Source: Oikopleura dioica (Eukaryota; Animalia; Chordata). Taken from it: 64,000 bases of DNA. How positions within the stretch are numbered: position 1 is the first letter of the stretch; each line of letters opens with the position of its first letter. This document shows positions 1 to 64,000 of this stretch, in pieces. Under the pieces are notes generated by a model. It made no database searches and was not told the DNA's origin. It saw only the letters and a list, made by a program, of their open reading frames with translations. Location: positions 14,074,001-14,138,000 of the forward strand of contig OU015566.1 of the NCBI GenBank assembly GCA_907165135.1, written 5' to 3'. The position numbers were made by a program, and so were the translations under genes.

Positions 1-3000
1 TCTAAATCCTGCACGGGCGATGCTGATTTTTCCCCTGAAGATTATATTAGTGACAATCGTCAAATTTTGGTATTGCCACAAGCATCAATATTTAAATTGA
101 ATATGCAAAAGAGAATGATAGATTTAGATAAGCCGATGAACGCGGCAGGATTAGCTGTTTTCGTTCTGACAGACGAGCTTCAGCATTTGAATATGCGATG
201 CTCTGTCAAATTCGCTGATGTTGATTGTTTCTCACCTCGGCTAGCATCGGAGGCAGCAGCTGCTTCTCCTTCCTCCTCATCATCATCTGGCAAAGGAACA
301 TCCAGGGGATTAACTGACATCGGGCTGGCCGGTTTCTCTTGATTTTCAAGAGCAGCCGCATCTGACTCCTTTGTCGGTTCAACAGCCACGGGAGCGCTTT
401 CCACTACTTCAGCTTGAGCCACAGGCTTTGCTTCTTCCGGAGCTGGCGGGGGAGACGGGGATTTCTTGACAACGGGAGGAGGCGAAGGAGACTCTGTCTT
501 TTTTCCGTCGCTTGAGTTCTTGGCACTTGGTTTTGCGGATTTTGAAGGCTTAGGAGATGGCTTGACTGCCGCTGTAGCTGATTTTGGCTTCGGTCTAGGG
601 AGAACATTCTAAGATGGATAAAAATGATTGCATCTATCTTACGTGGTGGTCGTTTTTTGCTGACGAGGACTTGGTCTAGCCGTAGATTCATCTTTCTTCG
701 CAGAACTAGACGCGCCAACTCCGGATGTTCTTGGATGTCTGGGCGTAACTGAAGCTGACCTTGGCTTCACTTCTCTGGCGGGTTTCTTGGCATCTGGCGT
801 TTTGGAAGATGTTTTCGACAATGAAGGGGTCTCGGATCCGTCTGGTTTTGGGCGAAGAGAGGAAGAGGAGATCACATTGGAGGAGTCTCTGGATGTGTTG
901 CGACTGCGAGGTTGAGGGGTTGTGCGACCAGAGGGCTGAAGACACAGAAGATAATTTCTTGGACAAAACAAAAATAAGAAGTAATCAAAATGTTTGTAAA
1001 TACACACCTTGGGCTTGGGATCGAGCGAATGCCGCTCGGATGAAACAGTACGAACACGAGGCTGGGCAAGTCTGTTCAAATGTTCATGGGAGATCGTCCT
1101 GCGACGGAGTTTCGCTTCCTTTAGTGAGGAGTCGCCATTCAGGCTCGGAGGCGAGGAAGTCTACAGAAAGAGTAGTTATATAAAAAACAACATGAGGATA
1201 GGAAAAAGTCTGTAAAATGAACCAACGGGCTAATTCATGTCTAGACTTCAGGACATTCTCTAGCGAAGGAAAACTTCAAGAGCAAGAAAAATGAGTTGTC
1301 GATAGTTATTTCGCTTTTGTACCTGTCCATCTGGCTTTCCGAAGCGTTTGGCTCTGGAGGACGCGGTAGGAGTGAGCAGTCTGTCGGGAACGGAGAAGGA
1401 TGAGTTCTGCGACTTGCAATCTCGCGGTGTTCCAAGCGTTGATCCATTCAGGGAGTCATTGTCGTCCTGATCGAAACCGCCTCGGAGACTTCCAATCCAA
1501 GACTGAAAAAAAAGACTTGAGGCATGATCTTCCTTGATTTTGTGCGATGGAGATTTCCAAAGATGTTGAATTTATTCAACTGGTCTTTTTTCCATCAAGC
1601 CTCGGAATAAATGGGGGAGATTTGATCGTGTAGAAAGGGTGAAAGTGAAAGTGGAACGGTAGTATTGATTTGAGGCGATAAAAGTAAGTGAAAATGATAA
1701 GTGCAAAATGCGCGCATGCAAGTTTTTTTCTGGCATTTTGAAAGTACCTTTTCTGCGGGGATTATTTCCGCCTAAAGACGTCAAATTTGAAATCAAAATC
1801 AGAAAGAACAAAGGAAACTCGAGTAATACAGTACCTGCATGGATCGAGGCATAGCAGTGGGCCTCGCTCTTGAGCCATCATCCCCACCGCCTGAAAACGA
1901 CGTTACTTTACGATTCTCTCTACAAATTTAAGGCACACCAGTAAATATTCAAATTTTCATGCAACACGATTTCGGAAACATGATTTTGAAAATGGGAGAA
2001 TTGGGAACTCGGCCAAAATCAGCAAAAACGTAGGTTCTGCGAATTCACCCGAGGTCACAATTCCCGACTTTGAAAAAGGGAAATTCTGGTTAGCAAATTC
2101 TTGATGACAAGGCGCTGAATAATTATACGATTTTGCATATCAGACAGCAGCGGAATATTAGCGCGATTTTAGCCCCCGTTTATGTAAGCACCCGTTTTTT
2201 TAATAAGCACCGAATGAGGGGTAATATCTTACTGTCGAGCATGTCGGTGCCGAAGACATCTAGTAAAAACAAATGAGTTAATACAAGCACAACATCCAAT
2301 GAGTTCTTTAGTCAAAGAGGGGAAACAACGAAAAAATGGTACAAACGAGAATTTACAATTTTCATCTGGTTCAGTACCCTCTGCGATGGTCTCCGAGGGG
2401 AAGTTATACCACCATGTTCCTGAGAGACAGAAGTTGATTGAGTTAGATTTCGTTCTAGTTTAGACAATTTTCTATACTAGATATTTTCATTTATAATGAT
2501 ATCTACTATCTAAAATAAAGACGCTTTTATTCAGTCAAAAAAGACCGAAGAAGCGTCCTTCTAGAAATTCTTTCGAAAGAAAGTTTTTGTTTTCAAGGTT
2601 CTCTTCCTTGATTTCATATGAAAAATTACCGTGAACGGCGCCGTTCCAGCTCCATCGTTTCTTTTTCTGCGCTTCTCTGCTTCTCGCTTCGCCTTTTTCC
2701 AAGTCCGAAAGTGCCTTTTCTTTCTTTTGACGAAGAATGACTTCTCTTCTTTCTTTTGCTTCATCGTGTCTGGATGATAACGAATCTAAAAACAAAGCTT
2801 GCGAAGGAGAGGCCTATTTTGTTACCTCTTCGTTGTTTTCGTTCAGTCTCAGTTTGCGCTTGAATTTGTGACTTTCTTCTAGCTGCAGTTTCTGCTCTGT
2901 TGACTGTTTCTGAATATCAACGATTTATAATGACTTTCTACAGAGGTTAGCTCGCGTGTCGGATTTTACCCGAAAATGAAATCCGTCTTGACAGGCAAGG

Positions 3001-3495
3001 TCGTGTTTTTCATGCAATTTTAAAAATGAAATGAGAAAAAAGCGACTTTGTTTTTGCTCTTTGAAATTCAGTTGTGGCTTTTTTGGTTTGCTGAAGTAAC
3101 TTTTGTTCGTGAAGGAAAGTGATGGTGGGTGATGAATGTTTAATTGTGTTCTACTTTGGAACACGTGATTCTACTTGTTTTTTGGATGCGAATTTATGTT
3201 ACTATTACTTGTTGGAAAGAAAGGTTTAATTAGATGGTTAGTTGGGGAAGCGGCTTTTAAGTTAAAAGCGCTGTTACCATCAGAATCGTTCCACATGAAA
3301 CATCCGCGGACGCCGAGATCTTGGTCAAAGGTTCAATCAAAATTAGAAAATCTTTACAGAATCACCGAGCATGAATCTGGCTCTAGAATATTCATTACCT
3401 TGGCGGGCGGCTTCACGCTCCTTTTGAAGCCGTTCCCGTCTCTCCCGAGCCGCTGCGATTTTGTCTTCAAGAGTCACTGGCTTCTCGATTTCCAT
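1..3495 (-). CDS. MAP7: MAP7/ensconsin-family microtubule-associated protein (multi-exon; 3' end runs off window start)
   Basis: Spliced translation: MEIEKPVTLEDKIAAARERRERLQKERE (ATG 3495), SRHDEAKERREVILRQ...KKRWSWNGAVHG (cf. MAP7 NRWSWGGSLHG), DRLLTPTASSRAK (cf. NRLLTPTHSFLARS), then S/P/K-rich and acidic low-complexity exons. Confidence 0.8.
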
Positions 3496-3770
3496 TCTAC
3501 TTTTTTCTTTAAAAAGGGTTGAAATGAAACAATATCGTCTTAACTTTGAAGCTTTTAATTCATCACAGTATATTTAATTTTAATACAGATTGACAATACA
3601 GTAATAAACAAACAGTAGCAAGTTGGACGGTCGAACTTTCTTTTACAATTTTTTACAGAAAGAGCGAAAGTTTTTGTATTGAAGAAATATTGTATTTTGC
3701 GTGAGTTGATAGGAATCCGCCATTTTTGGCGATTGTCGATTTACAATTCGGATGCTCTCAGCTCTGAAGT

Positions 3771-6700
3771 TCATTTAAGATTCTTTCTCGATCTTGTGAT
3801 TTGTTGGAAAATGGCTTTAGCTGGATAAAGATTAAGATTAAGCCCTTTCCAGATTTCCTGCAGCTTCTTCCTCTTACCTTCTATGTCCTCTTCGATATCC
3901 GAGATATGAATTTCGACCTGGAAATCGTCTTCCTGAAGCGTTTCCACTTCCTCCTCCATTTCTATCTCCATATTTTCGACTTCCCCATCTTCATCACCGC
4001 CACGTGTTGTCCTTGTCTCCGCCTCAACTTCAATTCTTTCGCGCTCATCCTCCGAGTGTTCCTCGGAATCTGAAACGGATATTAAAAAGAAAGCCAACAC
4101 TCAAAGGCCAGATTGTCACATTTGAGAGCTAGACAGATCCGAATCCCTGAGTGTCTGGGCTCAGAAAAAAGAGGGTCTGGGAAATTTGAGGAAAGTTATT
4201 TTTTGCTTATCGATCAAATACTGACCTTGAGCATTATTTGGCGCGGCGTTGGCAGGATTGATGAGTGGCTCGGCGATGAGGGGGGTGAATCTCCGTCTGA
4301 TTTGAAAGGTGTTCTTTTACGATTCATAAATGCATATAAAGCGAAATTTCTAACTCTCAATCTTTTCAGCCAATAAGAAGCCTCTATAACTCGGCTAGGC
4401 CAATCAGAAGCGAGCAAAACTCACCAAACAGGTTCGAGCATTTCTGATTGGCTAAGCGTATGGAAACAGGCCTCTGGTTGGCTGAAAAAGCCCAAAAGTC
4501 TTCGAAATAATTTTGAACCGTTCCAAAACAAAGGGCAATTCAAAGTGATGAAAGAAGAAGATCATCATATGCATGGTCAACATGCAAGAAGTAAACAAAG
4601 CGATAAACGCGTTTCTTCGACTGAATAGAATTAATTCTAGCGCGTCTTCTAAGCGAGGGATCCTACCTGGTGTAGATGTGGTTATACATGTAGAAGCCTA
4701 AATGGTACAAGTAGAAGAAGCGGATCCAGTACTTTTTGGTTATGGGCGTGTGGCAGCAGTAGGAGTGGAATTGGTCAGCGATCCAAACGGACAAAATCAC
4801 GTAGAAAGCGATTCTAGCGCTCGTTTCGACAGTGTTCTCCTCAGAACTGATGGAGAAGCTCTCGAAACGCGTTCCTGGAATCTCCAAAGTACTCGGACAT
4901 GATGTCTTCGAGCCCAATAAGCGCTAGAACGGAGCTGGCCACGGCGCCGTAGGGAAAGTGATTGTGAATTGTCAAATTTATGGATGCAAATAAAACCCTC
5001 CTGAATCAAAAAAGGGATGATTTTCAATTGAGTATCCACGCCTGAAGATCGAGGGGACCTTCCGTTAGCACCCGGAACACAAACATGAACACCTGTTTAT
5101 AAGCGAACCTACAGAGTAGATGATGAGAAAACCAACCATGAATCAAAATCACCAAATTAATTCGAATTACCTAAGAAGCATGGCAATCAGCGCCGTAAAG
5201 ACCATACAGGCGATTACAGGCACATAAAGCATTCGTTTCTTGTGACCGCCGTTGAAGACAGTAAACTGGTCCTTAGTTACAGTGTTTCTGATAAAACCGG
5301 TGTTTCCGGAAATCTGCACGATGGAGTCCAAAACGATCCAGTCGTAGCCAAACCACTCGGCCAGCAAAACGCGGCCGAACTTGTCCCAAACAAGTGATTT
5401 GAAGCAGTCGTCTTTGGATGGATCGAGCATCACTTTGATCACTTCTACGTTTCGGGTTTTTCGCGCCTGCTCGGATAAACGGAGGTAGCCATACTCGTGC
5501 GAGAACTCAAAGCGGACTAGGTTGAGGTAGTCGAAGCCAAAGTCGAAGATGTTTCTCATGCTAGAAAGATTATTACAAACGAGTTTGAATCTGCAGCCAT
5601 TTGGAGTCATTTTAGGACGAAATAGGCCTTTCCAAAAATTTCGGAAAAGAAATCGCACCTGAAATAATTGGCCTGATAGTGAAAGGGCCGAGAAGGGTTG
5701 GGAGTGTCGGTGATTACATCCGTCGAAATAGTGATAAGTCGTCTGGATATGTTCTGATAGGGCTGATGCTCCAGTTCGCGGTAGAGAGGACATTGGTTCT
5801 CGATTCTGAAAGGCGGAAATGATGCCCTGCTTAGCGACAGAAAACAAACAAGATGGTTACTGTAACATTCGATTATGCTGCTCTAGAGACAGGCGCGTAC
5901 CTGTATAAATAATCAGAAATAAGCGCTGATCTTCGTCTTCCAATCTCTACCCGCAAAATCGACTCGACGGGGATCTTGCCCTTCAAAGGCAGCAGACAAG
6001 TACTGGTGTTGGGGTATCCGACGTGTGAATAAATAAGAGCCAATGCTGCGCCCAGCGCCTAAAACAGCGAAAATGAACAATAGCTTTTGAAAAATCAACC
6101 CTGCTGCGCGATGAGGTGTCATAAAATTTTACAAGCGCGAAAAAAGAAATGGAAAATTTTTCAATCAAAAAATGAAGAGAGAAATTCTTAAAGAGGCCGC
6201 CTCTTCAAATGACTTTCTCATCGAGTGTTGCCATTTGAATCTTGAGTGCGCATTTTATTTCCAGTAATTAATTCGAAATACGAGCGTCTTTCATTAATAA
6301 AAATTCCCCCCTCCAGCAGCAGAAACTTTCTCTATATTAATTTTTCACCTTTATCAAAACAACAAATTCCAAAAAGCGGCGAAGTCCTTTTTTGCACCAG
6401 CGGGCGTAGCGTTGACAAAATGACTAAAGTGAAGGGTGCGTAACGTATAATTCTCTGTATAATTAATTCCATTCTTTCGAATTGACAATCGCCTACAGGT
6501 AGAGCAAGCTAAAGATATGATAATTGCTCGTTATCGTTTTACAATCTACATCTACCACTAGCTATTTTACAACTTTTCTGAAGCTTTTCTTAGAAATATT
6601 TTTAATTTTTCAAAGAAAAAACCACAATTGGCATCAATTTTTTAAGAAAAGGTTATTTTTCTACCCGAGTTTTGTTGATATATATAAAATAGATTCTGCA

Positions 6701-18925: not shown

Positions 18926-19707
18926 CTACAGTTGGCAAACCATGAAATGGCATTCTCCAGATTCGAGTTTTCCGTTGTAATGAGCCGCTCCGAAAGCTTC
19001 TTCGTAATTTACCGATGTTGCAGTTTCAAAACCGAGCTAGAAAGTAGTCAAATTAGGAGCAAACCAGCGAGTTACCTTTTGATAGGTCTTTCTCAAAGGC
19101 TCGACTGTAGCAAAAGCAGTAGCATGGTTTCTTCCTCGTTCTCGCGCTCGGTCCAGGGCGGTTTTTACGAATTCAGTTCCGATTCCTTGTTGTCTTCAAA
19201 AATGAAAGGGGGAGAATTGAATGAAAATTTACCTCAGATCGGTTCGAACAACAACAGTAGCAATTTCGTAGCATTCTTCCGCTTCTTTGACGTTGAATTG
19301 CTGATCGAGGTTTTTGGTGTCGCCGATGAGGGATTTGACGAATTCTAGAGCAGAAATCGGCCGCTGGAAGTTTGGAAGACAGGGGCAACAGTTGAGCCAG
19401 CAGAGCGCGGAGGAAATCAGCGACAGCTCCGTTTTCTTCGAAATGTCGTAGCCGACTACAATGTTTTTTTCGGAAGAAAAGGTGCGAAAAACATACTGAT
19501 AACCGCTGCCAATTTGCCATCCTGATCCCTGTAGCAGATATTTAACTCATTGTCGCAAGCGTACGCCACGAATTGCCGCAGTCTCTTTGGATTAGGTTTT
19601 TCAGTCGTTTGCGCTGCCGCCTGAGCGAATGCATTTTTCTGGAGAAATTCTAGCACCTCGTCCGTCTGATCGCCGACGATTTTCTCTAAATGAAGCTCGG
19701 CTCCCAT
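18926..19707 (-). CDS. GNAT-family N-acetyltransferase (insect arylalkylamine NAT-like fold)
   Basis: Spliced motif A VVVRTDLRQQGIGTEFVKTALDRARERG, then ATAFAT...YQKLGFETATSVNY. Confidence 0.7.
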
Positions 19708-51232: not shown

Positions 51233-52793
51233 TTAGTGCGAGAGGATGGGGCGAGCCTTTTCTTCCATCATTTTCTCTGTTTCGGCGACTTCCTTGACCC
51301 AGTCGCTGATTCTGTGGCGCATTCTGTCGATCTACGGAAAGGAACTCGTATGGAAGGTGCGTGGGTGGCGTAGTCTTTTTACCTGATCAACGGAGAGTAC
51401 TCTAGGTTGCACCCAGGTCATATGCACTTTTTCGTCCACCTCATCGATGGTTCCTTTGACAAGATTGAGCGATAACGCGCGGATGATGAGACTTTCTACA
51501 TCTAGAATCAAGTTTTAGCTTCCTATATTTCCTCTAGAAAATTCTGAAGCTTAAGTCCAATCTCAAAATGAAAATGGGAAGATCAAATGCTTTCTGGGCG
51601 TGTCTGATGCCACCCATGAAGAATCTGAAAAATATTTGCTCTTACCAGACTTGGCAAGATTTGTTTTCTCAGCGATTTCAGCGAAGGAAAGGGCACGGTC
51701 GTTTGCAGGTCGGACAAAAGTCATTTCCATCAAGCACATGAGACACATTTTTTCGTAGAGTTTTTGACTAGCCGCCTTGGAAAAGTGAGTTTGATGGAGG
51801 TTTTATGAAGTTGAAGGGTACCTTGAGATCAGCTTGTGTTTGCCACTGGGAGGCAGTGGACTGGAACAAATTAATATCGCCAGAATTGAACGCTTGAAGG
51901 AGATCAACGAGCCATGAGTTTGGAGTGTTTTGAAGAGAGGCAAGGATATCGTGCTGAAGAAGTTCGCCCGTGTTGTACACATCCTAAAACGATCTTGATT
52001 TCTCGTCAGATTCGGGGACTTACTGAAGCTAAAAGGGCGGAAATGCCAATAGAAAAGGCTTTTTCCTGTTTTTCTTCAGCCGAAAGTGATCTAAATAGAC
52101 AGTAAAAAAGCTGTAGAATTGAGAAAATATTACTTCACATCTGCGACTCCAAGGTATTTGAGCGAGTTTTTGTAGTAAAGTCCGTGGTTGGCTTCAATTT
52201 GATAAAGTTTGGAAGCGAGCTCGTAGAATCGACTAAAACACGACCTCATTTTCCGATGGCCAAAACCATGCCTTACCTGTGAACCTGAGGGACAATTCCA
52301 AGACCATCGATTTCTTTCTCGACTTCTTCGATAATTTCCTTGACCTTTTTTCTGTCATCATTGATTCGCAAAATAGTTGCGCCCAAAATAACTTTGATCA
52401 AAATCGTGCTCATCTGGCAGGCAGAAACTTTGGATCCAGCCTTTTCGAGGAATTTTTCAGCATCTTCAAGTTCGGAAATATTCGCGACGGCGCGCTGGAT
52501 GACTTCGACGAGGGAGAGCTTTTTCATCTTTGATTCATATTCGGAAACAAACTGCCTGGAAAAAGCGTAAAAAATCGATTCTAGGAAAGTGAAACTCACT
52601 CATAGAAATTCAAAGCGGAGCAAGTAAAGAACGGCTTCTCCATAAACTCCAAGATCGTCTGGCTCATCTGATGCCACAATTTCTTCTTGGAATACAACTC
52701 AAGCTTTGACCAGTATTCTGCGGCTTCGTTTGGGCAGTCTTGCTGCATCTGGGCGGCCCATGCGGAACCTTTCAAATCGAAGCTCACTGACAT
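51233..52793 (-). CDS. PSMD13: 26S proteasome lid subunit Rpn9
   Basis: [87 protein letters not shown]. Confidence 0.95.
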
Positions 52794-52870
52794 TCTAAAA
52801 AAATAAATTCCTTGATTTACTTTCTCATGATTTGAGCGGCAGAAAAAAGCAGCGCGGAAGCAGCAGTTTA

Positions 52871-53493
52871 TTATTCTGGGCGCTTGAATTGCATCGTATC
52901 ATCTTCTGGCTCTGGATCTTCCGCTTCTAGCTGCCTCTTTTTCTTCTTCGAAAGTGGCTCGTATACAATTTCATCGGTGTCATTATCATCTAAAAATAAA
53001 AGATAAAAGTATCATGAAGTCAAAATTAACTTACAGTTGACTCTATCTGCGTTTTCCCTCGCTCTCTTGATCATTTCCATCGCACTAACATCCTCTCCCA
53101 AATCATCTTCTTCTTCGCCCTCTGGTCTGTTCATCCTTTCCGCAAGTCTCTCCAGCGGCTTATTGAATCCGCCGTAGCTTGCCCTTCCCCATCTAGAAAA
53201 ATTCAATCATCAATCAATACCTTCAAAAACCGCTTTACCTGAGCCCCATACATTCTGCAATCGAAATATCTTCATCTTCCTTGAATTTCACTTCCAACGG
53301 CTGCACTTCTCTGAACCACTGTTCTGGCCGCGTTTTCAACTCTGCTGCCTAGGTAAAGAAATCAACAACCCTTTTCGCTGAGAGAGCGCTTTTTTACCTC
53401 TGCGTCCAAATCAATCGCACTCTCTGCGCGACGCATGAATTTCATACTTCGCAGATTTCTGCTCAAATTCGTCTTCGACCTACGCTCGCCCAT
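52871..53493 (-). CDS. MPHOSPH6: M-phase phosphoprotein 6 (nuclear exosome cofactor)
   Basis: KTNLSRNLRSMKFMRR, WGRASYGGFNKPLERL, DVSAMEM, terminal FKRPE*. Confidence 0.85.
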
Positions 53494-53553
53494 TCTTGAA
53501 TCGAGAAAAAGTAAAAAAAGAAGCTTGAAATTCAAAATATACAGATTTATCAT

Positions 53554-54445
53554 TCAATCATTAGCTGGATGTTCCAAATCCAACCAAGGAATTCCAGAAA
53601 ATGGAACTTTTTTGCGATACTCTTCGTATTCTCTTCCGAATAAGTACAGTAGCGTTTGCTCTTCGTGAGGAATTCTTTCGGCGAAAAATGTGTACGTAGC
53701 AGCAGTGTAGATAATTATACAGACTGGGTTGCAAAGGCAAACTAAAATGAGGTATAACAACGATCGAATCAATCATGTTTACCTTGAGAAGCAATGGACC
53801 ACAATCCCCATCCAAAATAAGAAGGATGTCTGCACAAACTATACGGGCCACTGGTAACCAGTTTGTGCTCCGACCTTCGATGATACTGGATCAAATGCGT
53901 GAAGCCAGCCCCACACCAGATCATCGACAACTTTCTGATAAAATCTCCGAACAAGGTCAAATAGAAACCAAAGCGGGAAACGACAGAAATAACGTATCCA
54001 GTTCCAAACAAAGCGTGCAACCCAGCGAATTCGATGACAGCGGCGGCCATGGCAGCGTGGTAGGCGGGAGAGTGGTTGAGTAAGAAGGAAGTGTACTTGA
54101 GTTGGGCTGGGTTGGAAAGAGCTACGGCCAGGTATTCACCTTAAATTTTCGGTGATTTTGATACAGGAAATTGGTCATACCTAGATGAAAAATTGAGACA
54201 ATGATAATAAAGCTATCAAGCGGTTCAGGCACTTCCCAACTGCAGCTGTACAACACACCAATGAACGCTGCTCTTACAACCGAAGCCAAAGTGAAATTTC
54301 GAAGAACAAAGAACGACCCAAAGAGGCAGATTCCCAAGGCAAACTGGACGAATCTTCTGTCTTTTTCAATTTGAGCTAGGAGCCAGATCATGGAGAAGAA
54401 AGTAGATAAAGTGACAAGACAACATAACAATGGACGATTTCGCAT
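53554..54445 (-). CDS. ICMT: Isoprenylcysteine carboxyl methyltransferase
   Basis: SFLLNHSPAY, FTHLIQ...HKLVTSGPYSLCRHPSYFGW, LCNPVC, RIPHEEQTLLYLFGREYEEY. Confidence 0.95.
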
Positions 54446-54515: not shown

Positions 54516-55184
54516 TCAGATTAAAGCTTGCCACTTGGGCTCATCTTCTTCATAGACTAAGTTGATTGTTTCTTGAATCTTTTTAATCGTTGAATACTCC
54601 ACATCTGGGCAGATGGCTTTTCTCCAAGATTTCTCGCAATATTCATCTTGAAAAATAAAAATATTTAACTTCTCGCTGGACCGCTAGAATAATTACCTAG
54701 AGGTATTTGCGCCCCATGAACTTTGAGGGCAAGATCAATACACGCAATCGCAACCGCTTTTTGTTCGAAGTGGATGATTTCCGGCCGGTGAAGTCCGTCC
54801 ATCAAAAAGCTAACTGAAAACTCGGTAAATAAGAATCTTCCTACATTTCTCTTGCCTGATGATTTTGCTACTGCCTTGAATACAGTAACGGCAGGATGGT
54901 TGTTCTGAGTTGGCCTTCCGTGGAACCACTTTTCAATGACGAAAAGATAGTGGCATGTCAAGTCGAAAAATTCAGGCTTTGGGACATGAAAGTTCAGAAC
55001 TCGCAGGATCTAGTGTATTTGTTAGCGTCTGAAGTATCCTAAGTCCTTACCAGAAGTTCTAGATTTCCGATCGAATCCCTCAGATCGTAGAATGGATCGC
55101 TTAGCGTTAAGGGCGTGTCAGTCTTATTGGTGGTGCAGTAGACAACATTGACCAAGTCTCGGAGACGAATGAGCACTTCGGACT
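54516..55184 (-). CDS. CCNQ: Cyclin Q (FAM58A), 3' portion only; 5' exons absent from window
   Basis: RLRDLVNVVY...PLTLSDPFYDLRDSIGNLELLILRVLNFHV, HYLFVIEKW, AVAIACIDLALKVHG, KSWRKAIC match the C-terminal two-thirds of cyclin Q. Confidence 0.8.
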
Positions 55185-56923
55185 CTGAAAACGGACTAAC
55201 ATTGGATCACTGCCAACACTAGTCCAGACCAGGGTCTCGAAAAATTGGATGCGCGGCGGTTGTTTTGGCGCCCCCTCTCGCTTTCAACCCCCGCGCCCTA
55301 GATGTTTGCGCGAGAAAACAACGGTGGGCTGGATGTTGCGCCACCCTCCGCGGACAGTTGTGCGCAACGGGAGCCGGTTGTTAACAACGGGCGCTCGGTT
55401 GTTCACCAACAAGTTCGCGGTCCTCGCCTCATAGAAATAAACAAATTAGTACCCTACGTCGCCATTCTAAGTAAATGATTTAAATATCATATTTGATTTA
55501 TCAAAAAAGATGTTATTATCCAAATAATTTTTAGATATCTTTATAATCTTAGTTTTCAAGAAACAACTCAGCAGAAAATATTTCAGATTATCCTAGCTGC
55601 CTAGTTAGGGACTTTATCAGGTAGACGCGGTGTTTAGATGACTGAGTGTAAGTGGCAGTGCGCTTGTGCTTTGCGCGCTCCCCGGGGTACCTGAAAGGCC
55701 CCATAATCTCAGTGGGTGCACACTCTGACCTACTGTAACAAAAATCACCGGGTGATCCAAACAAAACAGTTCTCGGAAGTGGTAAGCTACCTGTTTGCAA
55801 AAAATATCGAATTTATAGGCAACTATTACGCCCAAAATGTGCTAGTTACTTGAACGATGATCTGTCAATCATAAATAGCTAATTGCCCCGAATCTCAAAA
55901 TAATTTTTACATATTCGTAATCAGCGGAAAAAGTTATATATGGGGTCTAAGTTTCACTGAATTTGAACATTTTTGCATATTCCTACAGCGTTACTTTCCC
56001 TTTGGCGCGAGCCTATATTTCAAACATCCAGCCCAAATTGTTTTTGAAAGTGAACAACGAGCGCGCCGATTTTTTTTTTAATATTTGAGTTTATTTAAGC
56101 AACTAATCACGTGGTTAGAAGCCTGTGCACAGAAAATGGAAATAAAAGAATAAACAGAACAGAAACAAAAGAGTGATGATAACGTAAAAAGAGTAGGGCT
56201 GTGTTGGGGATGAAATATGAGTGGGTACGGGGAGGATGGGTCCATGTCAGGAATGTGTAAGTAGCTACAGTATGTCATATACATAGATATATGCACACCA
56301 GGTGAGAAAGTGATGGAGGAAGGCCTCTGCCCGCAAACAAATGCAGGCAGCTGCCTGCCTAAAGGAATTCAATCGAATCCCGTGCGCTCATCCAGAGCCG
56401 CTGTAGGCCTGTAAACCCAGATGGTTTAAGCAGACTGCCAGCCAAAAAGTGTGAAAGTATAGCCCTGAGGGAAAATACGAGATATATAGTATAAATAAAT
56501 AAATGATAAGAGTAAATACCTACGTAATAAAATACTAATGGTCATAAGGAGAGTATAATGTAGTAGCAAGCATTAAACATACATGGAAAAGTAACTAATA
56601 AGAATTGTACATCAATATGTGTAAGGTATAAATAAATAATTAGGAGAAGAGAGAAATAGCAGTGAGACGTAGCAGATACACAAACTGGTGTACAAGCTGA
56701 TAATAACATATCTAACGTGGCTAAAATAAATATGATTTGTAGATTCCTGGAGTTCATGTCTTCGCCTGTTTTCGTTGCTGTGTTGTTGAGATGACGGTTC
56801 GTGTTGTTGATTTTCACTGGGCGGGGAATGCAATAATCATGACATTCTCTAGAATGCGTGGTGTTATTGTGATTTTTGCGCCCCGCGTCTTCAGTTCATT
56901 CTTGGACCTCCGAGGGTTAACAC

Positions 56924-59900
56924 ATGGAGCCATTTACTGGAAATTATTACGAGGTGAGTGTTGAATAGGAGCGTGATAAAGTTTCAGTTTAAGGTTTATC
57001 ATATTTCATAAATATTTTGAATGATTACTTTATATCAGTAATCTAAACTCCTATAAGGTTAAATGACAATGGGCTATCCAGAGATACCACATGCCTTCCT
57101 GTTGATTCATGCTAGTAGATCTATTTTATTTTTCTGCCAAAAGCTGACAATGCATAAATCAAATGATTCATATTGCGTTGATCGCAGCCGATGGTCAAGA
57201 GGCATAACAATTTTTCGAGCTCTTAGATTCTTTCGAGTTACTAGAAAACAGAGAAAAGCTGGCTTTCATATAATTATTTGAGGCAGAAAGTAATTATTAT
57301 TGGATAATCATTCTAATTATTTTAAATTTTTTCATATAGAATGTGTTGGATTTGAATTAAGTTCACTTTAGACTTAGAGGCTTTATTTTATTTTATAGAT
57401 TCTTTCCGACTACACTTGCGAGGAATTGGAATACTTCGATGAGTTCGGAACGTTTCCAACTTCTTTGGAGCTAGAGTTTTACCTTATGAGCTTAAATGAC
57501 TCATTCCCCCAGCTACCGTCAGATGCGTCGATGGTGATGGAGCCAATTGAGCAATCTCGTGGTAAAAAGTCTACTCAGACGAGCAAGGGACGCCCAACTC
57601 TATCCGATGTTCTCAAGGTTGCCGACACCATGAAAGTACGACCCCGCGCTGGATTCGGAAAGGTCAAAAAGACACCCCAGAGGGGATCTTCGCAACTCCG
57701 CAAGTCAGCTCGTCTTTCCAAAATGCGCAAAGCCGATAAGAAGCTTGAGGGTGTCTCCACCGCCAAACCGGCTGACCCCGAAGAAATGGAGACAGATACG
57801 CAGCTGCCTACCGAGGCAGGCAGTAGCCAACCTCAGCTTACTTCCGAGGATTTGGAGCAACGAGATGCAACTGGTAAGAAACTTAGATTTGCTTGCTCTC
57901 ATCAAAACATGTGTTCTAGAAAGAAGTCCACCCACTGAACAAGAGATCACCGCTGCCGAGGCAAGCTTGGTTCAATCAACCGAAGAGCAAGAAGATGTGG
58001 TCGACTGTGGGCCCGATCCAGTTCGTAGATTAAAGCATCCCGGTCTGCCACTCCCCGCCAACGAAACTCGACCTCCTATCGTTCCCGCTGAGGATTCTTT
58101 GCTCGCCGAGCCTAACTCTGACGATGAGGAGAGCAACTGGGAAACTGTGCAGCCCTGGGCAGAGTCGCTTTATCACGTAACGGAGTTACTATACTATGTA
58201 TGTAATTAATTTGCTCTTAAATGGTTATATAAAGCCCTAGAATAACTATTAATTTCTGACCAAAACTATTTTAGTTCTTGCTTGGTTCAACTAACCGCGC
58301 TCTTAATGACGATAACACCAAGCTCAGAAGTTTGTATCACTTCATTTCCTCTTTTGTTCCAAGCTTGGTTTCAATGTACGACCCACAAGATACACAAATA
58401 TCCCGCACTGTATTGAAGGGAGTACATCTCGATCTTCTTGATCCTAGCCTCCAGGATTCACAATTGCTGCATCAGAAGACTTCCTCCATGCTGAGATTCG
58501 TTGGGGCATTTATGGGACGCTACCTTGAGCGAATCTTGTATCAAAAGCCCGAAGATCAGACATCTGACAGCAAGAACACACTCCAGAACAGGTAGGTTCC
58601 TGCCTGCATACCTCTTCATTAATATTTACTTATTTATTTTTCACAGTCTACTACCACTTGTTGATGAGGATGAGGTGTCTCCTTTGATGGCTTCTCTGGA
58701 GGCTGTTTTCAACAAGAATCTGTTGGAGAAGTCATTAAGCGAATCATTAAGAAATTTGATCTGCTTCCACCTTCAGGTAAGTTATTCTTTGTTATTAATA
58801 AGAGTTCTTATTCTTGTTTTAGCGCTTATTCCGAGTGCTTTCGCCCGAACTGCTGAAGCAATTATTGACTAATATGCCACCCAATCTGCAGTTGTTCACG
58901 CGCGTTAACCACATATTGACTAATCGAAAAGAGCCTGCTCCAACTACTATCACCTGGTCGACATTGCCACATCACTTAGAGTATCGCCGTCAGTTTTATT
59001 CGTGGACTGCCGACAATCAGGCTGCAAATGAACCAGGTGACGGCTTGATCATTAATTCTTGTAAGGAGTGAGCTCTTGAACTCGATAGATATGGTTGAGA
59101 GCGAGGAATTTCTCCTAACTGAACACTTTAGTTGATGAACCTCCTTGTAAAATCCCTGTTGCATCTCGGTGTGAGATTTATACTCTTCGTTCCTTGGAAT
59201 TTTATGACTTGATGTCAGGAAACATCCAGCGAATTCGTCAGGAGGAGCGCGAGCGAGAAGAACGAGAGAGGGAAGAACAAAGACTTCAAGCAGAGCGATT
59301 AGCCACCGAACAAGCCGAAAAGGAAAAAGAGTTGGAAAAAGAGAGAATTTCACGCGAGCTGGAGGAGCAGAAGAAGATGGAGACTACGCAGCAGAAGACA
59401 CTTCAGGACGCGGCGCAAGGGCAATCAACCGTTCTTCCTGAATCTCAGCCTCATTATTCGCCCACGTCTTCTAACTATCCCCATACTCCCAGTACAGCTT
59501 TCTCCGATCATGGGACCGTGCACCCTGCACCTGGTGATTCTGAGATGGATATTTTGTCCAATCATGGCTCCCTTGGACCAGGTCATCACGACATCAGTCT
59601 AGATGAAAATGATGAGATTGATGTGGAAGGCTTGCAGAATAACCCCGCCAGCTCCACCTCAGCTCAACCTATTCATTGTTACCTCGTCATAATTCAGGGG
59701 ACTCACGCTGAAACCATCCGTCTGCCTAATTCTGGTAAGGAAATCATAGCTAATCTCAATATTCTTAATAATATATTTCATTCCATTTCATTAAACAATA
59801 TTATTTCTAGTTGGATTCGCAGAGGCTGCTGGAGTTCTCCAGCATTTCCGTCCGAATACTGCCTACCCAATGCAGGCAGCTACCTCTGTTCAAGCCTCGG

Positions 59901-62900
59901 CAAGTACTCTTTATCGTGAGCAGCAGAGTGGTGCTCCACCGATGACTTATATTCCTCCTGTGCCATCCGACAATACCGTCCAAGGCGATTCCCAGGCGGA
60001 GTTTGAAGATCCTCCTGCAGTGAACTTGGAGCGAATTGGTGTCGAGCCTGTCAATTTTCTGCAATTACTTCACGATGAAACAACTGCCATGGTAACGACT
60101 TTATTACAGCCAACTGGTGAGCCTTCTGGAAATAACGTCGGGCATGTATTTCCTGTTGATCTGCCACCTCGTGTTTGGGGAAGGTACAGCGACACAACCG
60201 ACTACCAACTGATCTATTTCAACGAGTTGGACAAGTCTAAAGTTCGAGTCGAGTATAGAACGACCCCAAGTGATGAGACTGCGTCTATTCGTCTCGCTTT
60301 GATAACGGCAACTCAACTGTTGCCTTCCCCTGCGACTAGCGTCGAGAAACACAAGTGTAGAGTTGTTGCATTCCAAGAGTATTTCAAGACTGTTGGAGAC
60401 TCACCCCAAGCACAACTCCCCGCTGATCTCGCCAAGAAAATCAAGGGTGCTAGAGTGGTTGGTGGATACTGTAAGTGTTACCAAGCGTTCTTGCTTTTAA
60501 AGCTTAATATTTTATTTCAGCTTCATGGCTTCATCATTTCAAGACTGACTTGCCCAATTATGAGAATCGTAACCCTGATGAACCCACGCCTCTACCTTAC
60601 TTGTCTCAACCTGATCTTTTCGATAAAGCTTATCATGATCATGTGACAATGGTCGCTCCCTTTTCTCGAACAGACCTCACTAAAGCCCCTGTTATACTAG
60701 GAAAGCTTTTAAAGGACGAGGCTATTGCTACACTCCAAGCGGTAGGCAACTGCCTGCCTTCTCAACTTGTTTAAACTTTCCGTTTAGAAAATGGATTTCT
60801 ACTACTTCCAGAATCGCCAAACAAGGTTCAAGGCAGCATTGTGCAATGATATCGCGCTTCAAGCCATACCTTCCACTTGGTGTCGTTCTGAGCCCTCAGC
60901 CGACCGTGCTTCCTGGCGTCAGCCCATATGCAGTTCAATTCGATGCGTTACTGCAGGACCGTGCTTGTTGAGGCATAGCACCGTTGTTGCTGGTTTGACC
61001 GAATCAATGTAAGATTTGTTATTATAGTTCATAAGAATATAATGGGGTAGAGGGGAGAGTAGGGTTCTTATTTTATTTATCAGTTTATAGCTATTTGTTA
61101 AATCCTAATTCAGACTGCCGGTTCTGCACTCCATCGCCGATCGCTTGTACCATGTAGCGAAACACGGCAGACATCGGCTGTTGGTCGAGAGTCTCGATGA
61201 TTTTGATCTTGCTTACAAAATGGAGCAAAGTTTATCGCTCCTCGGCGAGTCTTTATTTGACTCCCATACCTTCGTCGCGCCCACTCATCCTCAATTAGTG
61301 AATCACGGCCAGGCCCCAAGCAATCTCGTTGTTGGACAGTCGCTGCATTTCGGGACCCTTGGAGAATATCTACGAGTTCATTTTCCTGCTCCACTCAAGT
61401 CGGAGAACAGCGAGGTAGGCCTTTAGAAATCAGAATACATTTTTAGTATGTTTTGTCTAATAGAGAATGGATTTTCGGACAGCAACGAATTGAATCGATT
61501 AAGGATTGATTTCTTATATTATTATTTTAGTTTCACTCCCGCTATCTTCAACAGTATGGCCAAATTATGTCTTTGTTGAGCTGTTTGGGTTTCCGCGTTG
61601 TGTCACAACCGTCTTCTGGTGATCTATTCGTCCTAATGACTGATGTAACTGCCAGTCACTGCGCCAGACTCATGTCCTACTTCACCGAGATTTCAAGGCT
61701 CGAAAAGAAGTATTGCGATAATAGCTTCACCCGGGAGGAGTCCAACCTGCCTAAGCTGAGTGTTGATTCAGCATTACCAGCCTGTCTTTGCTCCACCGAG
61801 TATCCTTCGATAGTATTAAGACCCGATACACATCCCAGGTAAAATAACCACCTAATTACAACTTATCCTAACGAGATTTCATTGTTTAGTTTACAGGAGG
61901 TTTGCCACACCGCGTTTCATTCCTTTCTTCGATCTGTGCGTCGCGACCCACAATATGGCTTCAATTCTGAGTTGTATTCCAACCTCAGGAGAGCGAGAAC
62001 TTTTTACACACTACACGACAATCCTACCGATCTTGGATTGTTTCATGAGGATCGCCAGAAGTATCTGGACAAGCTGGTCCATTACTTCCATACTCCCGGC
62101 TGCTCGGAGGTTGCATTGGAGACCATATTGTTTCCACTGGAGCCAAACAAGACGTTCCACAACACCTGCCAGCATCGATTCTGTTTCATGCGATGCCACG
62201 CAAATCAGGCTGGATATCGTAGGATGCTGACTGTTCTATCATCTCAGAGAACATTGGAAAAGGTAGCGTCTCGATATTAACACAGGATTCTCCTTTTATG
62301 ATGGTATTAACCATCTTAAATTTAGACCGACGACCGATTCCGTGGTTTATCTGCCAAGTACCTTACGATACTGAATAACCCAGTGGAACCAGAAAGGACT
62401 GGGCAGACGAGTGCTAATTGTGTTATCGGCCTTGAGCTCCCCACCACTTACTTGGATCGCCTTTTTAAGGGTAATTATCAGTGTTCTTCCAGTTTTAAAA
62501 TATCACATTTTACTGATATGACGGGTTAGAGAAGATTATAAAACTTTTATTGTTTAGATATGGGCTCTCCTTTCTACCACGAGAGTAAGCATGTGGCTGC
62601 ACAAATGGAGCCTACTCCTCTGCTGAAGGCCTTTCTCAAGTACGGATGGAGCTTAACAGAGCTCAGTAGACTTGGGACAATTTACGGCCGCCGGGTATTG
62701 GGAGTGTTTCTTCGTCAGAGTAAGTCGAACAAGCGTCGGAACACACACCCCCGAGTCCCTCTACTCAACAGTCACTTCTTCCCGATGACACCAGACAGCT
62801 CACCGATGCTTCTTTCACCTCGACAAAGCCACCCGGTTGGTTTGGATGTCAAGTATCTATCCCTGCTTGAATCTGTAAAGATTCCCGCTGCTCGAAAGTA

Positions 62901-62901
62901 A
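56924..62901 (+). CDS. Large intact multi-exon orphan protein (roughly 1500 aa)
   Basis: MEPFTGNYYE|GTGAGT first exon joins in phase to ILSDYTCEELEY (57399); about 12 further exons join through GT-AG introns to ...VKIPAARK* (62901); basic patch, E/R coiled coil, His/Cys-rich C-terminal half. Confidence 0.7.
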
Positions 62902-63433
62902 TCCTGTACTTGTTCCATGTACCTTCCTGCATGAATAATAAAACAAGCTTTCATCATACACATTAGAGGCAGGTCACTGCCTGCTTTAGTTCAAGACAAC
63001 AGATTTATATGGAAAATCTGTTTTGAATCTTTTTTATTTTGAGTTTATTAATGATGATGACTTTTGGTAAAGTTTTTAGTAACACAGGAAGTAACATATT
63101 GGTAAATACACCTAAAGAACAAACAACAGAGTAAATAAAAGGGAATTCGCAGATTCAGCGATTTCGTGAGAAAGTAAGTAATTCCGCTAAAGAAAGTATT
63201 TTTGTTTTGATATGCAGAGATATTGGTGCCCACGTGATAAGGAGAGCGAGAAATTACAGAGGGGGTATTTACAGATAATTAGCTGTTGTGGCTCTCTGCA
63301 AATGATTTTTACTAGTTTTTTTGGTCTTAGAGATTCACGTTATTGGACAGAGGTAAAAAAAAGAACTACAATAAACAAAACAAGTGTTGTACTTGGAGAG
63401 CTTTAAAGAGAACATGATTTGAGGAGGGAAGTA

Positions 63434-64000
63434 TTATAACGATTCCAGTGATGGCGGTTCGTTATGATCTGACTCGTTTTCATCCAACTTTATCCTCTTG
63501 GCATTCAGTTGGTCAGTGAGTGGGCACAGTTGAAGAATTTCATTTCTTATTGCAAGCAGGTCATATTCTTCCCTTTTCCTCTTCTTGGAGCCGTTATGGC
63601 GGGTTGAGTCAGGGTCGAATAGCTTGCTGATCAGTGCATTGCTGACCCACTTAGGGTTTATTTCTTCAGAAGGGCCGTTTTTGTCTCCCAGACTTTTGAG
63701 GAGCACATTCATCCAAAGTTGATCATTCAGAGGTCCTGAATTAAAATTTAGACTCAGGTTAGAGGTAATTGTGCCTTCATTAGAGCACTGAATGATTCTT
63801 AACGATGAAAAAGTGTGCTTATTCCCCGAAAGTTCACTCCATCTTTGTGAATTACCGCTGAGTTGATCATTTAGCATTGACGTTAGCTCGGTTATTTTAC
63901 CAGTAATTTCGTTAACGTCTTCATCGAACATGTCTTTTGCGAACACTCCAATGAACGTGAACGGTAGTAATTTAGCACATTTGATCAATTTTCTCAGCTT
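63434..64000 (-). CDS. 3' end of a hypothetical protein convergent with the orphan gene
   Basis: Open 184-aa frame ending EPPSLESL*, NLS-like KKRKRE; no recognised domain. Confidence 0.55.
   Translation of the reverse strand, partial: KLRKLIKCAKLLPFTFIGVFAKDMFDEDVNEITGKITELTSMLNDQLSGNSQRWSELSGNKHTFSSLRIIQCSNEGTITSNLSLNFNSGPLNDQLWMNVLLKSLGDKNGPSEEINPKWVSNALISKLFDPDSTRHNGSKKRKREEYDLLAIRNEILQLCPLTDQLNAKRIKLDENESDHNEPPSLESL

Follow-up and report, generated by a model that had tools for sequence, protein, structure and literature searches.

An apparent hAT-type insertion holding a giant LINE in the first intron of a cyclin-Q-like gene of Oikopleura dioica

The cyclin-Q-like gene and its neighbours

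The window analysed here, by which the whole stretch of 64,000 bp is meant, is C4:14074001-14138000 on chr1 of Oikopleura dioica OKI2018_I69; genome-wide searches covered this assembly (64.28 Mb, 19 contigs), and features past position 64000 are given in window-equivalent, C4 or L035/L036 coordinates. On the minus strand a cyclin-Q-like gene is followed by a gene of the ICMT family and then by MPP6-like and PSMD13-like genes, in the operon-like run that a preliminary description of this DNA had recognized, and the ICMT-like gene starts at 54445, about 70 nt past the stop codon of the cyclin-Q-like gene. The cyclin gene itself has four minus-strand exons bounded, by inspection, by GT...AG. Exon 1 begins with the ATG, is 205 nt long, ends in ...ACAAAAG/GT (a slash marks a boundary here and below), and lies outside the window at window-equivalent 74889-75093 (C4:14148889-14149093, L036:889-1093). 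Within the window are exon 2 (134 nt, 55051-55184, with its AG acceptor at 55186-55185), exon 3 (313 nt, 54697-55009) and exon 4 (131 nt, 54516-54646, including the TGA stop), together with the remaining 37 nt of an originally 45-nt intron 1 (55185-55221), the acceptor end of which reads ...TTTTCAG. The homology to cyclin had been seen to stop at 55184, where exon 2 begins on the minus strand, and the N-terminal exon reported as missing from the window sits directly past the other end of the mobile element that is the subject of this report.

The exons were searched singly, and a natural protein, P0024, an orthologue-like sequence of 249 aa encoded on a 918-nt and presumably transcript-derived Logan contig, served as a proxy for the full-length product. 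Aligned by tblastn, residues 1-67 of P0024 fall at window-equivalent 75090-74890, residues 67-113 at 55188-55048, residues 113 to about 205 from 55009 downward, and residues 203-245 at 54647-54519. The exon lengths sum to 783 nt (205 + 134 + 313 + 131), or 260 codons and a stop, and it is on these lengths and the colinearity with P0024 that we argue for a coding sequence that would be intact and in frame. The preliminary view that the cyclin is cut off by the element does not hold in this form, as the insertion is intronic and leaves the four exons and their 783-nt frame whole. The gene is single-copy in the genome.

Naming the gene depended on the longer proxy. P0024 scores 26.4 bits on the Pfam Cyclin_N model against a cut-off of 23, and the single OKI exons reach 13.9 bits, below that cut-off; exon-wise searches of Pfam and the PDB were too weak to name the cyclin, word searches returned fragments without names, and a search of representative proteins with exon 3 gave 13 matches, mostly unnamed fragments and one unnamed fish protein. 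Exon 1 corresponds to the N-terminal segment of the cyclin box, with a weak Cyclin_N match, and is 100% identical to the annotated protein P0001 over residues 1-67. Among named ESM-Atlas clusters, those nearest to P0024 are 'cyclin-Q family protein' and 'Cyclin-Q' (score 0.95). In the PDB its best sequence matches, at about E = 1e-4, are to cyclins L1, K and T1, and no chain named cyclin Q is listed among them. The designation cyclin-Q-like follows the ESM-Atlas clusters, read alongside these PDB matches. Cyclin Q is a putative partner of CDK10.

A non-autonomous hAT-type element and its family

Immediately past the intron remnant, in the direction of the plus strand, the 8-bp sequence GTCCAGAC (55222-55229) is followed at 55230 by the terminus CAGGGTCTCGAAAAATT and then by about 170 bp of GC-rich DNA with CAACGG and CGGTTG repeats, and the preliminary description of 55222-55430 agrees with the letters in these respects. 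Read on the minus strand, the octamer is GTCTGGAC and forms the start of cyclin intron 1, GT donor included. The inverted right end that had been predicted beyond 64000 (...TTTTTCGAGACCCTG, then GTCCAGAC, then the 5' exon of the cyclin) is present there. It ends at C4:14148880 on the opposite strand, 19,651 bp from the left end and outside the window, and its junction reads ...CCAATTTTTCGAGACCCTG/GTCCAGAC/, after which comes cyclin exon 1 on the minus strand; this second copy of the duplication lies at window-equivalent 74881-74888 (C4:14148881-14148888, L036:881-888). An element longer than 8.7 kb inside the cyclin gene had been proposed, and the actual span is thus 19,651 bp. Both ends begin CAGGGTCTCG, and the CAGGG terminus fits the (C/T)AG(G/T)G criterion for hAT inverted repeats. 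The left terminal inverted repeat (55230-55288, plus strand) is identical to the right end over its first 22 nt and matches it at 54 of 59 nt overall.

The left subterminal region (55230-55430, plus strand) carries three copies of CGGTTG(TT), at element positions 28, 146 and 167, and three of CAACGG, at 90, 136 and 156. Where the left 201 bp has these six, shuffling that preserves dinucleotides gives 0.68 +/- 0.81, and none of 2000 shuffles reached six; the right end has a single occurrence, and across five close copies of the element the motif is limited to the ends. The region is 98-100% identical to four sister copies, and the same identity to sister copies is seen in the last 61 bp of the backbone at the right end (window-equivalent 74820-74880, C4:14148820-14148880, L036:820-880).

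It is clear that the terminus belongs to a multi-copy family, as had been supposed. At up to three mismatches its first 24 nt have 29 matches in the genome, against none for the reversed control, and the ends occur mostly as inverted pairs 0.1-2 kb apart; three solo ends (C1:2388410, C1:4501288 and C5:432205) are either short elements or partnerless within the DNA fetched. Perfect 8-bp duplications flank 12 of 12 complete elements examined, namely the 19.65-kb copy in the cyclin gene and others that range from 124 bp to 1976 bp. The transposase of Hermes prefers nTnnnnAn targets and binds subterminal repeats at the element ends through its BED domain (PMC10368747), and the family's duplications, with T at position 2 in 6 of the 12 complete elements and A at position 7 in 7, lean towards a Hermes-like preference of this kind (PMC10368747). 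Of the five closest copies one is 88% identical to the window backbone and the others 94-96%, and 18 substitutions in about 900 bp (about 2%) are private to the backbone in the window.

No transposase could be linked to these ends. A genome scan with PF05699, the hAT dimerisation domain, found nine places, none of them within the element or its family; tblastn with the reading frames of an autonomous hAT gave no match to the element or its sister copies; and a search of the genome for an autonomous partner sharing the terminus found none. An intact hAT that does bear a transposase, 6,073 bp long at C5:13843992-13850064, has ends CAGGGTGTCAAATCGC and an 8-bp duplication and shares only CAGGGT with the ends of the window family. 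Since no autonomous partner was found with this terminus, the superfamily assignment is drawn from the terminal sequences, the target duplications and the subterminal motifs, which support it well. The element is non-autonomous, its family being without a transposase, and because the family encodes none, the CGGTTG/CAACGG repeats are putative binding sites, probably of a transposase acting in trans. Rfam and tRNA scans of the backbone region 55100-56200 gave no match to a known RNA gene for the internal module of the backbone. The published annotation of OKI2018_I69 leaves 44% of repeats unclassified (PMC8008620). The family seems to be an undescribed and recently active one of non-autonomous hAT-type elements in a very compact genome.

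A giant LINE inside the element

The great length of the cyclin copy is due to a single insertion. A 918-bp sister copy at C4:4310309-4311226 aligns by BLAST with the element in two pieces, positions 1-862 of the sister with element positions 1-844 and positions 858-918 with 19591-19651, the left piece being 844 bp of colinear backbone at 55230-56073 on the plus strand. At the intervening point the sister copies are uninterrupted and read ...GAGCGCGCCG/ATGTTGAGAGCG... (...GCGCCG/ATGTTGAG). The window copy there reads ...GCGCCGA-T10-AATATTTGAG... at 56074 and ...AAAAGTGA/ATGTTGAGAGCG at 74819/74820. Because the sister is contiguous where the window copy holds 18,746 bp, the interior is exactly one block of that length, placed 61 bp from the right end of the backbone, with at most 2 bp (AT) duplicated where it joins.

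This block (window-equivalent 56074-74819, C4:14130074-14148819, minus strand) has its 3' part, 56074-64000, within the window. Its minus-strand 3' end reads ...GCTTAAATAAACTCAAATATT-A10, that is, AATAAA followed 14 nt downstream by an A10 tail (T10 on the plus strand, 56074-56083). On the minus strand are ORF1 (865 aa, L035:7284-9881), ORF2 (1802 aa, L035:1846-7254) and an ORF3 with its start inside the window; a long frame lies downstream, from 63434 onward. ORF2 matches the reverse transcriptase domain RVT_1 with E = 3.5e-21 (76 bits against a Pfam cut-off of 29.6), and a Pfam search of nine interior frames returned RVT_1 alone, apart from a sub-threshold low-complexity match to TAF4. Pfam endonuclease families gave nothing in the LINE frames at E <= 0.01; read by eye in the translation, GGDFNAQL and SIDHI upstream of the reverse transcriptase resemble APE motifs. 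The two ends of the interior have no repeat in common (neither LTRs nor inverted repeats), and both adjoin unique backbone sequence. All the long frames are open, so that about 10 kb of LINE reading frame is unbroken. At the DNA level the block is single-copy in the assembly, and the source copy of the LINE is thus not in this assembly. A Helitron, considered for the interior since the insertion falls at an A/T dinucleotide, was rejected: the ends are not TC...CTRR, and the A-tail, AATAAA and a reverse transcriptase are present.

Antisense to the LINE, on the plus strand at about 56924-62901, runs a large multi-exon gene, of which the exons 57399-59068, 60788-61009, 61109-61423 and 62542-62898 were tested. 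An intact gene of this size, with several long frames beside it and hAT-type ends on both sides, is what would be expected of a true cargo-carrying hAT that had captured host or novel genes in the Pack-type or transduplicating manner, and the preliminary description had spoken of a large cargo region. The relatives of the LINE argue otherwise. ORF2 has relatives in the genome at 28-35% identity, and at all four for which 10 kb downstream was fetched, homologous antisense exons (matching window 60788-61009, 61109-61423 and/or 62542-62898) lie 4-6 kb downstream in the same order. A fifth relative, a 5'-truncated copy at C4:2163045 within unrelated flanks, has a T14 followed by the same terminus (AATATTGAATTTATTGAAGCTACTAATCACGTGGTTAGAAGC, compared with AATATTTGAGTTTATTTAAGCAACTAATCACGTGGTTAGAAGC in the window copy) and five colinear antisense exons at 40-49% amino acid identity, plus a 23-residue match at 70%. 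One antisense exon, at 59870-60643, is without a paralogue anywhere in the genome. The plus-strand gene recurs, then, antisense to reverse transcriptase frames at five loci, the fetched stretches of which contain no match to the hAT family terminus; all that separates the two halves of the backbone forms a single poly(A)-tailed unit that encodes a reverse transcriptase; and the backbone, contiguous apart from this, is broken cleanly where the insertion lies. Capture by the hAT element is on this evidence very improbable. The interior is thus a full-length giant LINE, to whose family, and not to the hAT element, the antisense gene belongs, and what had looked like cargo is one poly(A)-tailed retroelement inside an ordinary 0.9-kb non-autonomous copy.

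History of the insertion and its consequences

The site without the element can be seen in wild relatives. A metagenome scan was queried with P0002, a 75-aa read-through peptide from relatives whose C-terminus, ...SKGLD-stop, is the read-through predicted from an empty site, and two independent marine-metagenome contigs, Ga0209092_10035503 and Ga0115008_10007521, have the exact empty site, in answer to the earlier proposal that such an allele be sought. Both read ...ATCAAAAG/GTCTGGACTAGTGTTGGCAGTGGTCCAATGTTAGTCCATTTTCAG/AGTCCGAG..., with a 45-nt intron in which GTCTGGAC occurs once and which differs from the OKI intron remnants at two positions; the element terminus was sought in both and is absent. 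The OKI flanks joined by a single copy of the duplication align with either contig over 248 nt without a gap, at 207 identical positions. Since the relatives' contigs carry an empty site with a single GTCTGGAC, the insertion is the derived state, with the first 8 nt of the intron, GT donor included, as its target.

These contigs also bear on the reading of the junction as an assembly artefact or as an ordinary long intron found in all individuals. The assembly was made from one male, with Nanopore contigs and Hi-C scaffolding into 64.3 Mbp and 19 scaffolds (PMC8008620), and a join peculiar to it is conceivable on that account; a misjoin would not, however, yield a pair of inverted repeats together with an 8-bp duplication that matches exactly and a known repeat broken cleanly by a nested insertion. 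As to an ordinary long intron, the intron at this site is 45 nt in the wild relatives and the median intron of O. dioica OKI2018_I69 is 49 nt (PMC8008620). We hold either form of this reading to be highly unlikely.

The explanation that we favour, at a probability of about 0.82, is a non-autonomous hAT-type insertion in cyclin intron 1 with a giant LINE later nested in it. In the Okinawa lineage a non-autonomous hAT of about 0.9 kb would have inserted by cut and paste at the very start of the 45-nt intron, duplicating the 8 nt GTCTGGAC that hold the 5' splice site; later, in an order that we infer, the full-length 18,746-bp LINE would have retrotransposed into this copy in the sense orientation of the cyclin gene. 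The outcome would be a composite of 19,651 bp that leaves four exons and their splice sites intact. Short element first and LINE second is the simplest history inferred, and a LINE younger than the backbone fits the contrast between about 2% of private substitutions in the backbone and about 10 kb of unbroken LINE frames.

An alternative sequence of events is that the composite was itself mobile, the LINE having landed in a short hAT copy elsewhere and the hAT transposase having then pasted the whole into the cyclin intron. Because both ends are intact and the outer duplication is perfect, the composite could have travelled whole; the subterminal repeats are undamaged as well, the LINE stops 61 bp short of the right end and leaves the 59-nt inverted repeat unbroken, and it has no second copy in the assembly, as relocation by cut and paste would leave it. 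A perfect duplication is equally expected if the short element came first, however, and the single-copy status of the LINE requires a lost source in this history too and so does not discriminate. No second composite or longer member of the family exists in the assembly, the other members all being 0.1-2 kb, and the 18 private substitutions in about 900 bp of backbone, set against the unbroken frames of the LINE, also speak against it, with the qualification that the location of the backbone at the time is then not fixed. A mobile composite is in our estimate unlikely.

The direct consequence for the cyclin gene is the enlargement of intron 1 from 45 to 19,704 nt (45 + 19,651 + 8), about 440-fold. 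The donor context is kept to position +8 by virtue of the duplication, and the acceptor with the 37 nt upstream of it is untouched. The LINE lies in sense orientation to the cyclin gene and places a signal for polyadenylation some 0.9 kb ahead of exon 2. A word search with the peptide of the exon adjoining the element recovered, as an NCBI protein, the public model Oidioi.mRNA.OKI2018_I69.chr1.g3841.t1 (114 aa), which uses the donor of exon 1, continues into two segments of the LINE 5' region (at about 74330 and 74203) and stops; no mRNA of the cyclin from the OKI lineage was among the database matches. As this public model suggests, the cyclin may be cut short within the LINE, which has its sense orientation, through cryptic splicing and polyadenylation there. 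Since g3841.t1 joins cyclin exon 1 to LINE sequence, it is a chimera and calls for a correction of the annotation, and through the insertion the only cyclin-Q-like gene may have been knocked down or knocked out naturally. There is a lesser prospect, which we would not expect to be borne out, that the composite is a functional unit moved by hAT transposase, and/or that the sense LINE, lying in intron 1 of the leading gene, has rewired the operon-like run, with downstream genes expressed from LINE-initiated or read-through transcripts, or that the cyclin is spliced across 19.7 kb. The mechanism proposed is ordinary, a nested insertion of known kinds, and the locus offers a clean natural case in which a 45-nt intron would have been inflated by two successive transposon insertions, with the exact empty site preserved in wild relatives; the remaining interest lies in what becomes of the sole cyclin-Q-like gene and of the run downstream, and in the small chance of a mobile composite.

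Parallels with known systems are instructive at each level of the structure. Non-autonomous hATs and hAT-type MITEs (Ds of the maize Ac/Ds system; the hobo, Ac, Tam3 and Hermes groups) have in common with the window family a CAGGG terminus, 8-bp duplications, short imperfect inverted repeats, subterminal repeats clustered near both ends, the lack of coding capacity, many short copies and a weak nTnnnnAn-like bias. In contrast to typical members of that class, the inverted repeat of the window family is long (59 nt at 92% match), and its ends diverge after CAGGGT from those of the intact hATs of the O. dioica genome. The LINE has the layout of other O. dioica giant LINEs with an antisense spliced gene, namely ORF1, ORF2 with reverse transcriptase, and ORF3, with the antisense multi-exon gene in the 3' third; it differs from them in that its long frames are all open, in that it is single-copy at the DNA level and in that it sits in a hAT-type element within a gene. 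As in other nested insertions of a LINE in a DNA transposon in an intron, the break is clean, poly(A) stands at one junction, the junction duplication is at most 2 bp (AT) and the duplication of the outer element is kept, whereas here the LINE, at 18.7 kb, is of unusual size and has an antisense gene with introns, and the host intron was only 45 nt long in a genome with a median of 49 nt. Pack-MULEs and transduplicating transposons likewise have genes between the inverted repeats of a DNA transposon, but the genes between the ends of the cyclin-intron element belong to a separately inserted retroelement and give no sign of capture by the DNA transposon.

Size variants and internal module of the backbone family

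Among the elements of the OKI2018_I69 assembly (G000) that share the terminus of the backbone, the hAT-type element in intron 1 of the cyclin-Q-like gene, the copy at C1:1332284-1332407 (L029) is a 124-bp mini-element that comprises hardly more than both inverted ends and is flanked by a perfect 8-bp duplication, ACTGCGAC. Because an element reduced nearly to its ends has this perfect duplication, its structure suggests that the terminal ~60 bp may be enough for transposition. Two longer members, of 1563 bp (C5:9661128-9662690) and 1725 bp (C4:2621865-2623589), each carry 670-830 bp extra at one common internal position (about 290-330). Similarity between these two extra segments is only about 69%; they could go back to a longer ancestral form or be nested inserts that arose independently. 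For the internal module of the backbone (window 55636-55974), about 25 additional related sequences, 68-74% identical, are spread across all large contigs. The module gave no match in Rfam and tRNA scans and may be common to several short-element families.

Other repeated and hAT elements

Within a stretch of C3 (L052, C3:1855000-1864999), elements with ends CAGGGCTGCCGAATTC occupy positions 681-1500 and 3916-5495. Since the identical 8 bp, TAGTAGAC, are found at all flanks, the region 681-5495 looks like a local duplication taking in both element and target site.

Seven near-identical hAT dimerisation-domain matches, sharing the same 177-aa open frame, lie in two pairs on C1 (636914/641782 and 732634/737494, 4.86 kb apart within each pair), at C4:380299/393172 and at C5:13847453. 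The copy on C5, at least, is an element of 6,073 bp with ends CAGGGTGTCAAATCGC and duplication GTGTTAGC, and the group represents a young autonomous hAT family.

The cyclin gene model and its downstream neighbors

The public model Oidioi.mRNA.OKI2018_I69.chr1.g3841.t1 (P0001, 114 aa) is a chimera of cyclin exon 1 and the LINE nested in the backbone: it joins that exon to two segments from the LINE 5' region (L036:140-330, window-equivalent about 74140-74330) and lacks the remaining cyclin exons. Downstream of the cyclin, closely spaced minus-strand genes lie in window 52273-54445: an ICMT family gene spans 53554-54445, an exon resembling MPP6 is at 53012-53206, and N-terminal repeats of PSMD13 are at 52273-52793. 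The gap from cyclin stop to ICMT start is only about 70 nt, an operon-like spacing.
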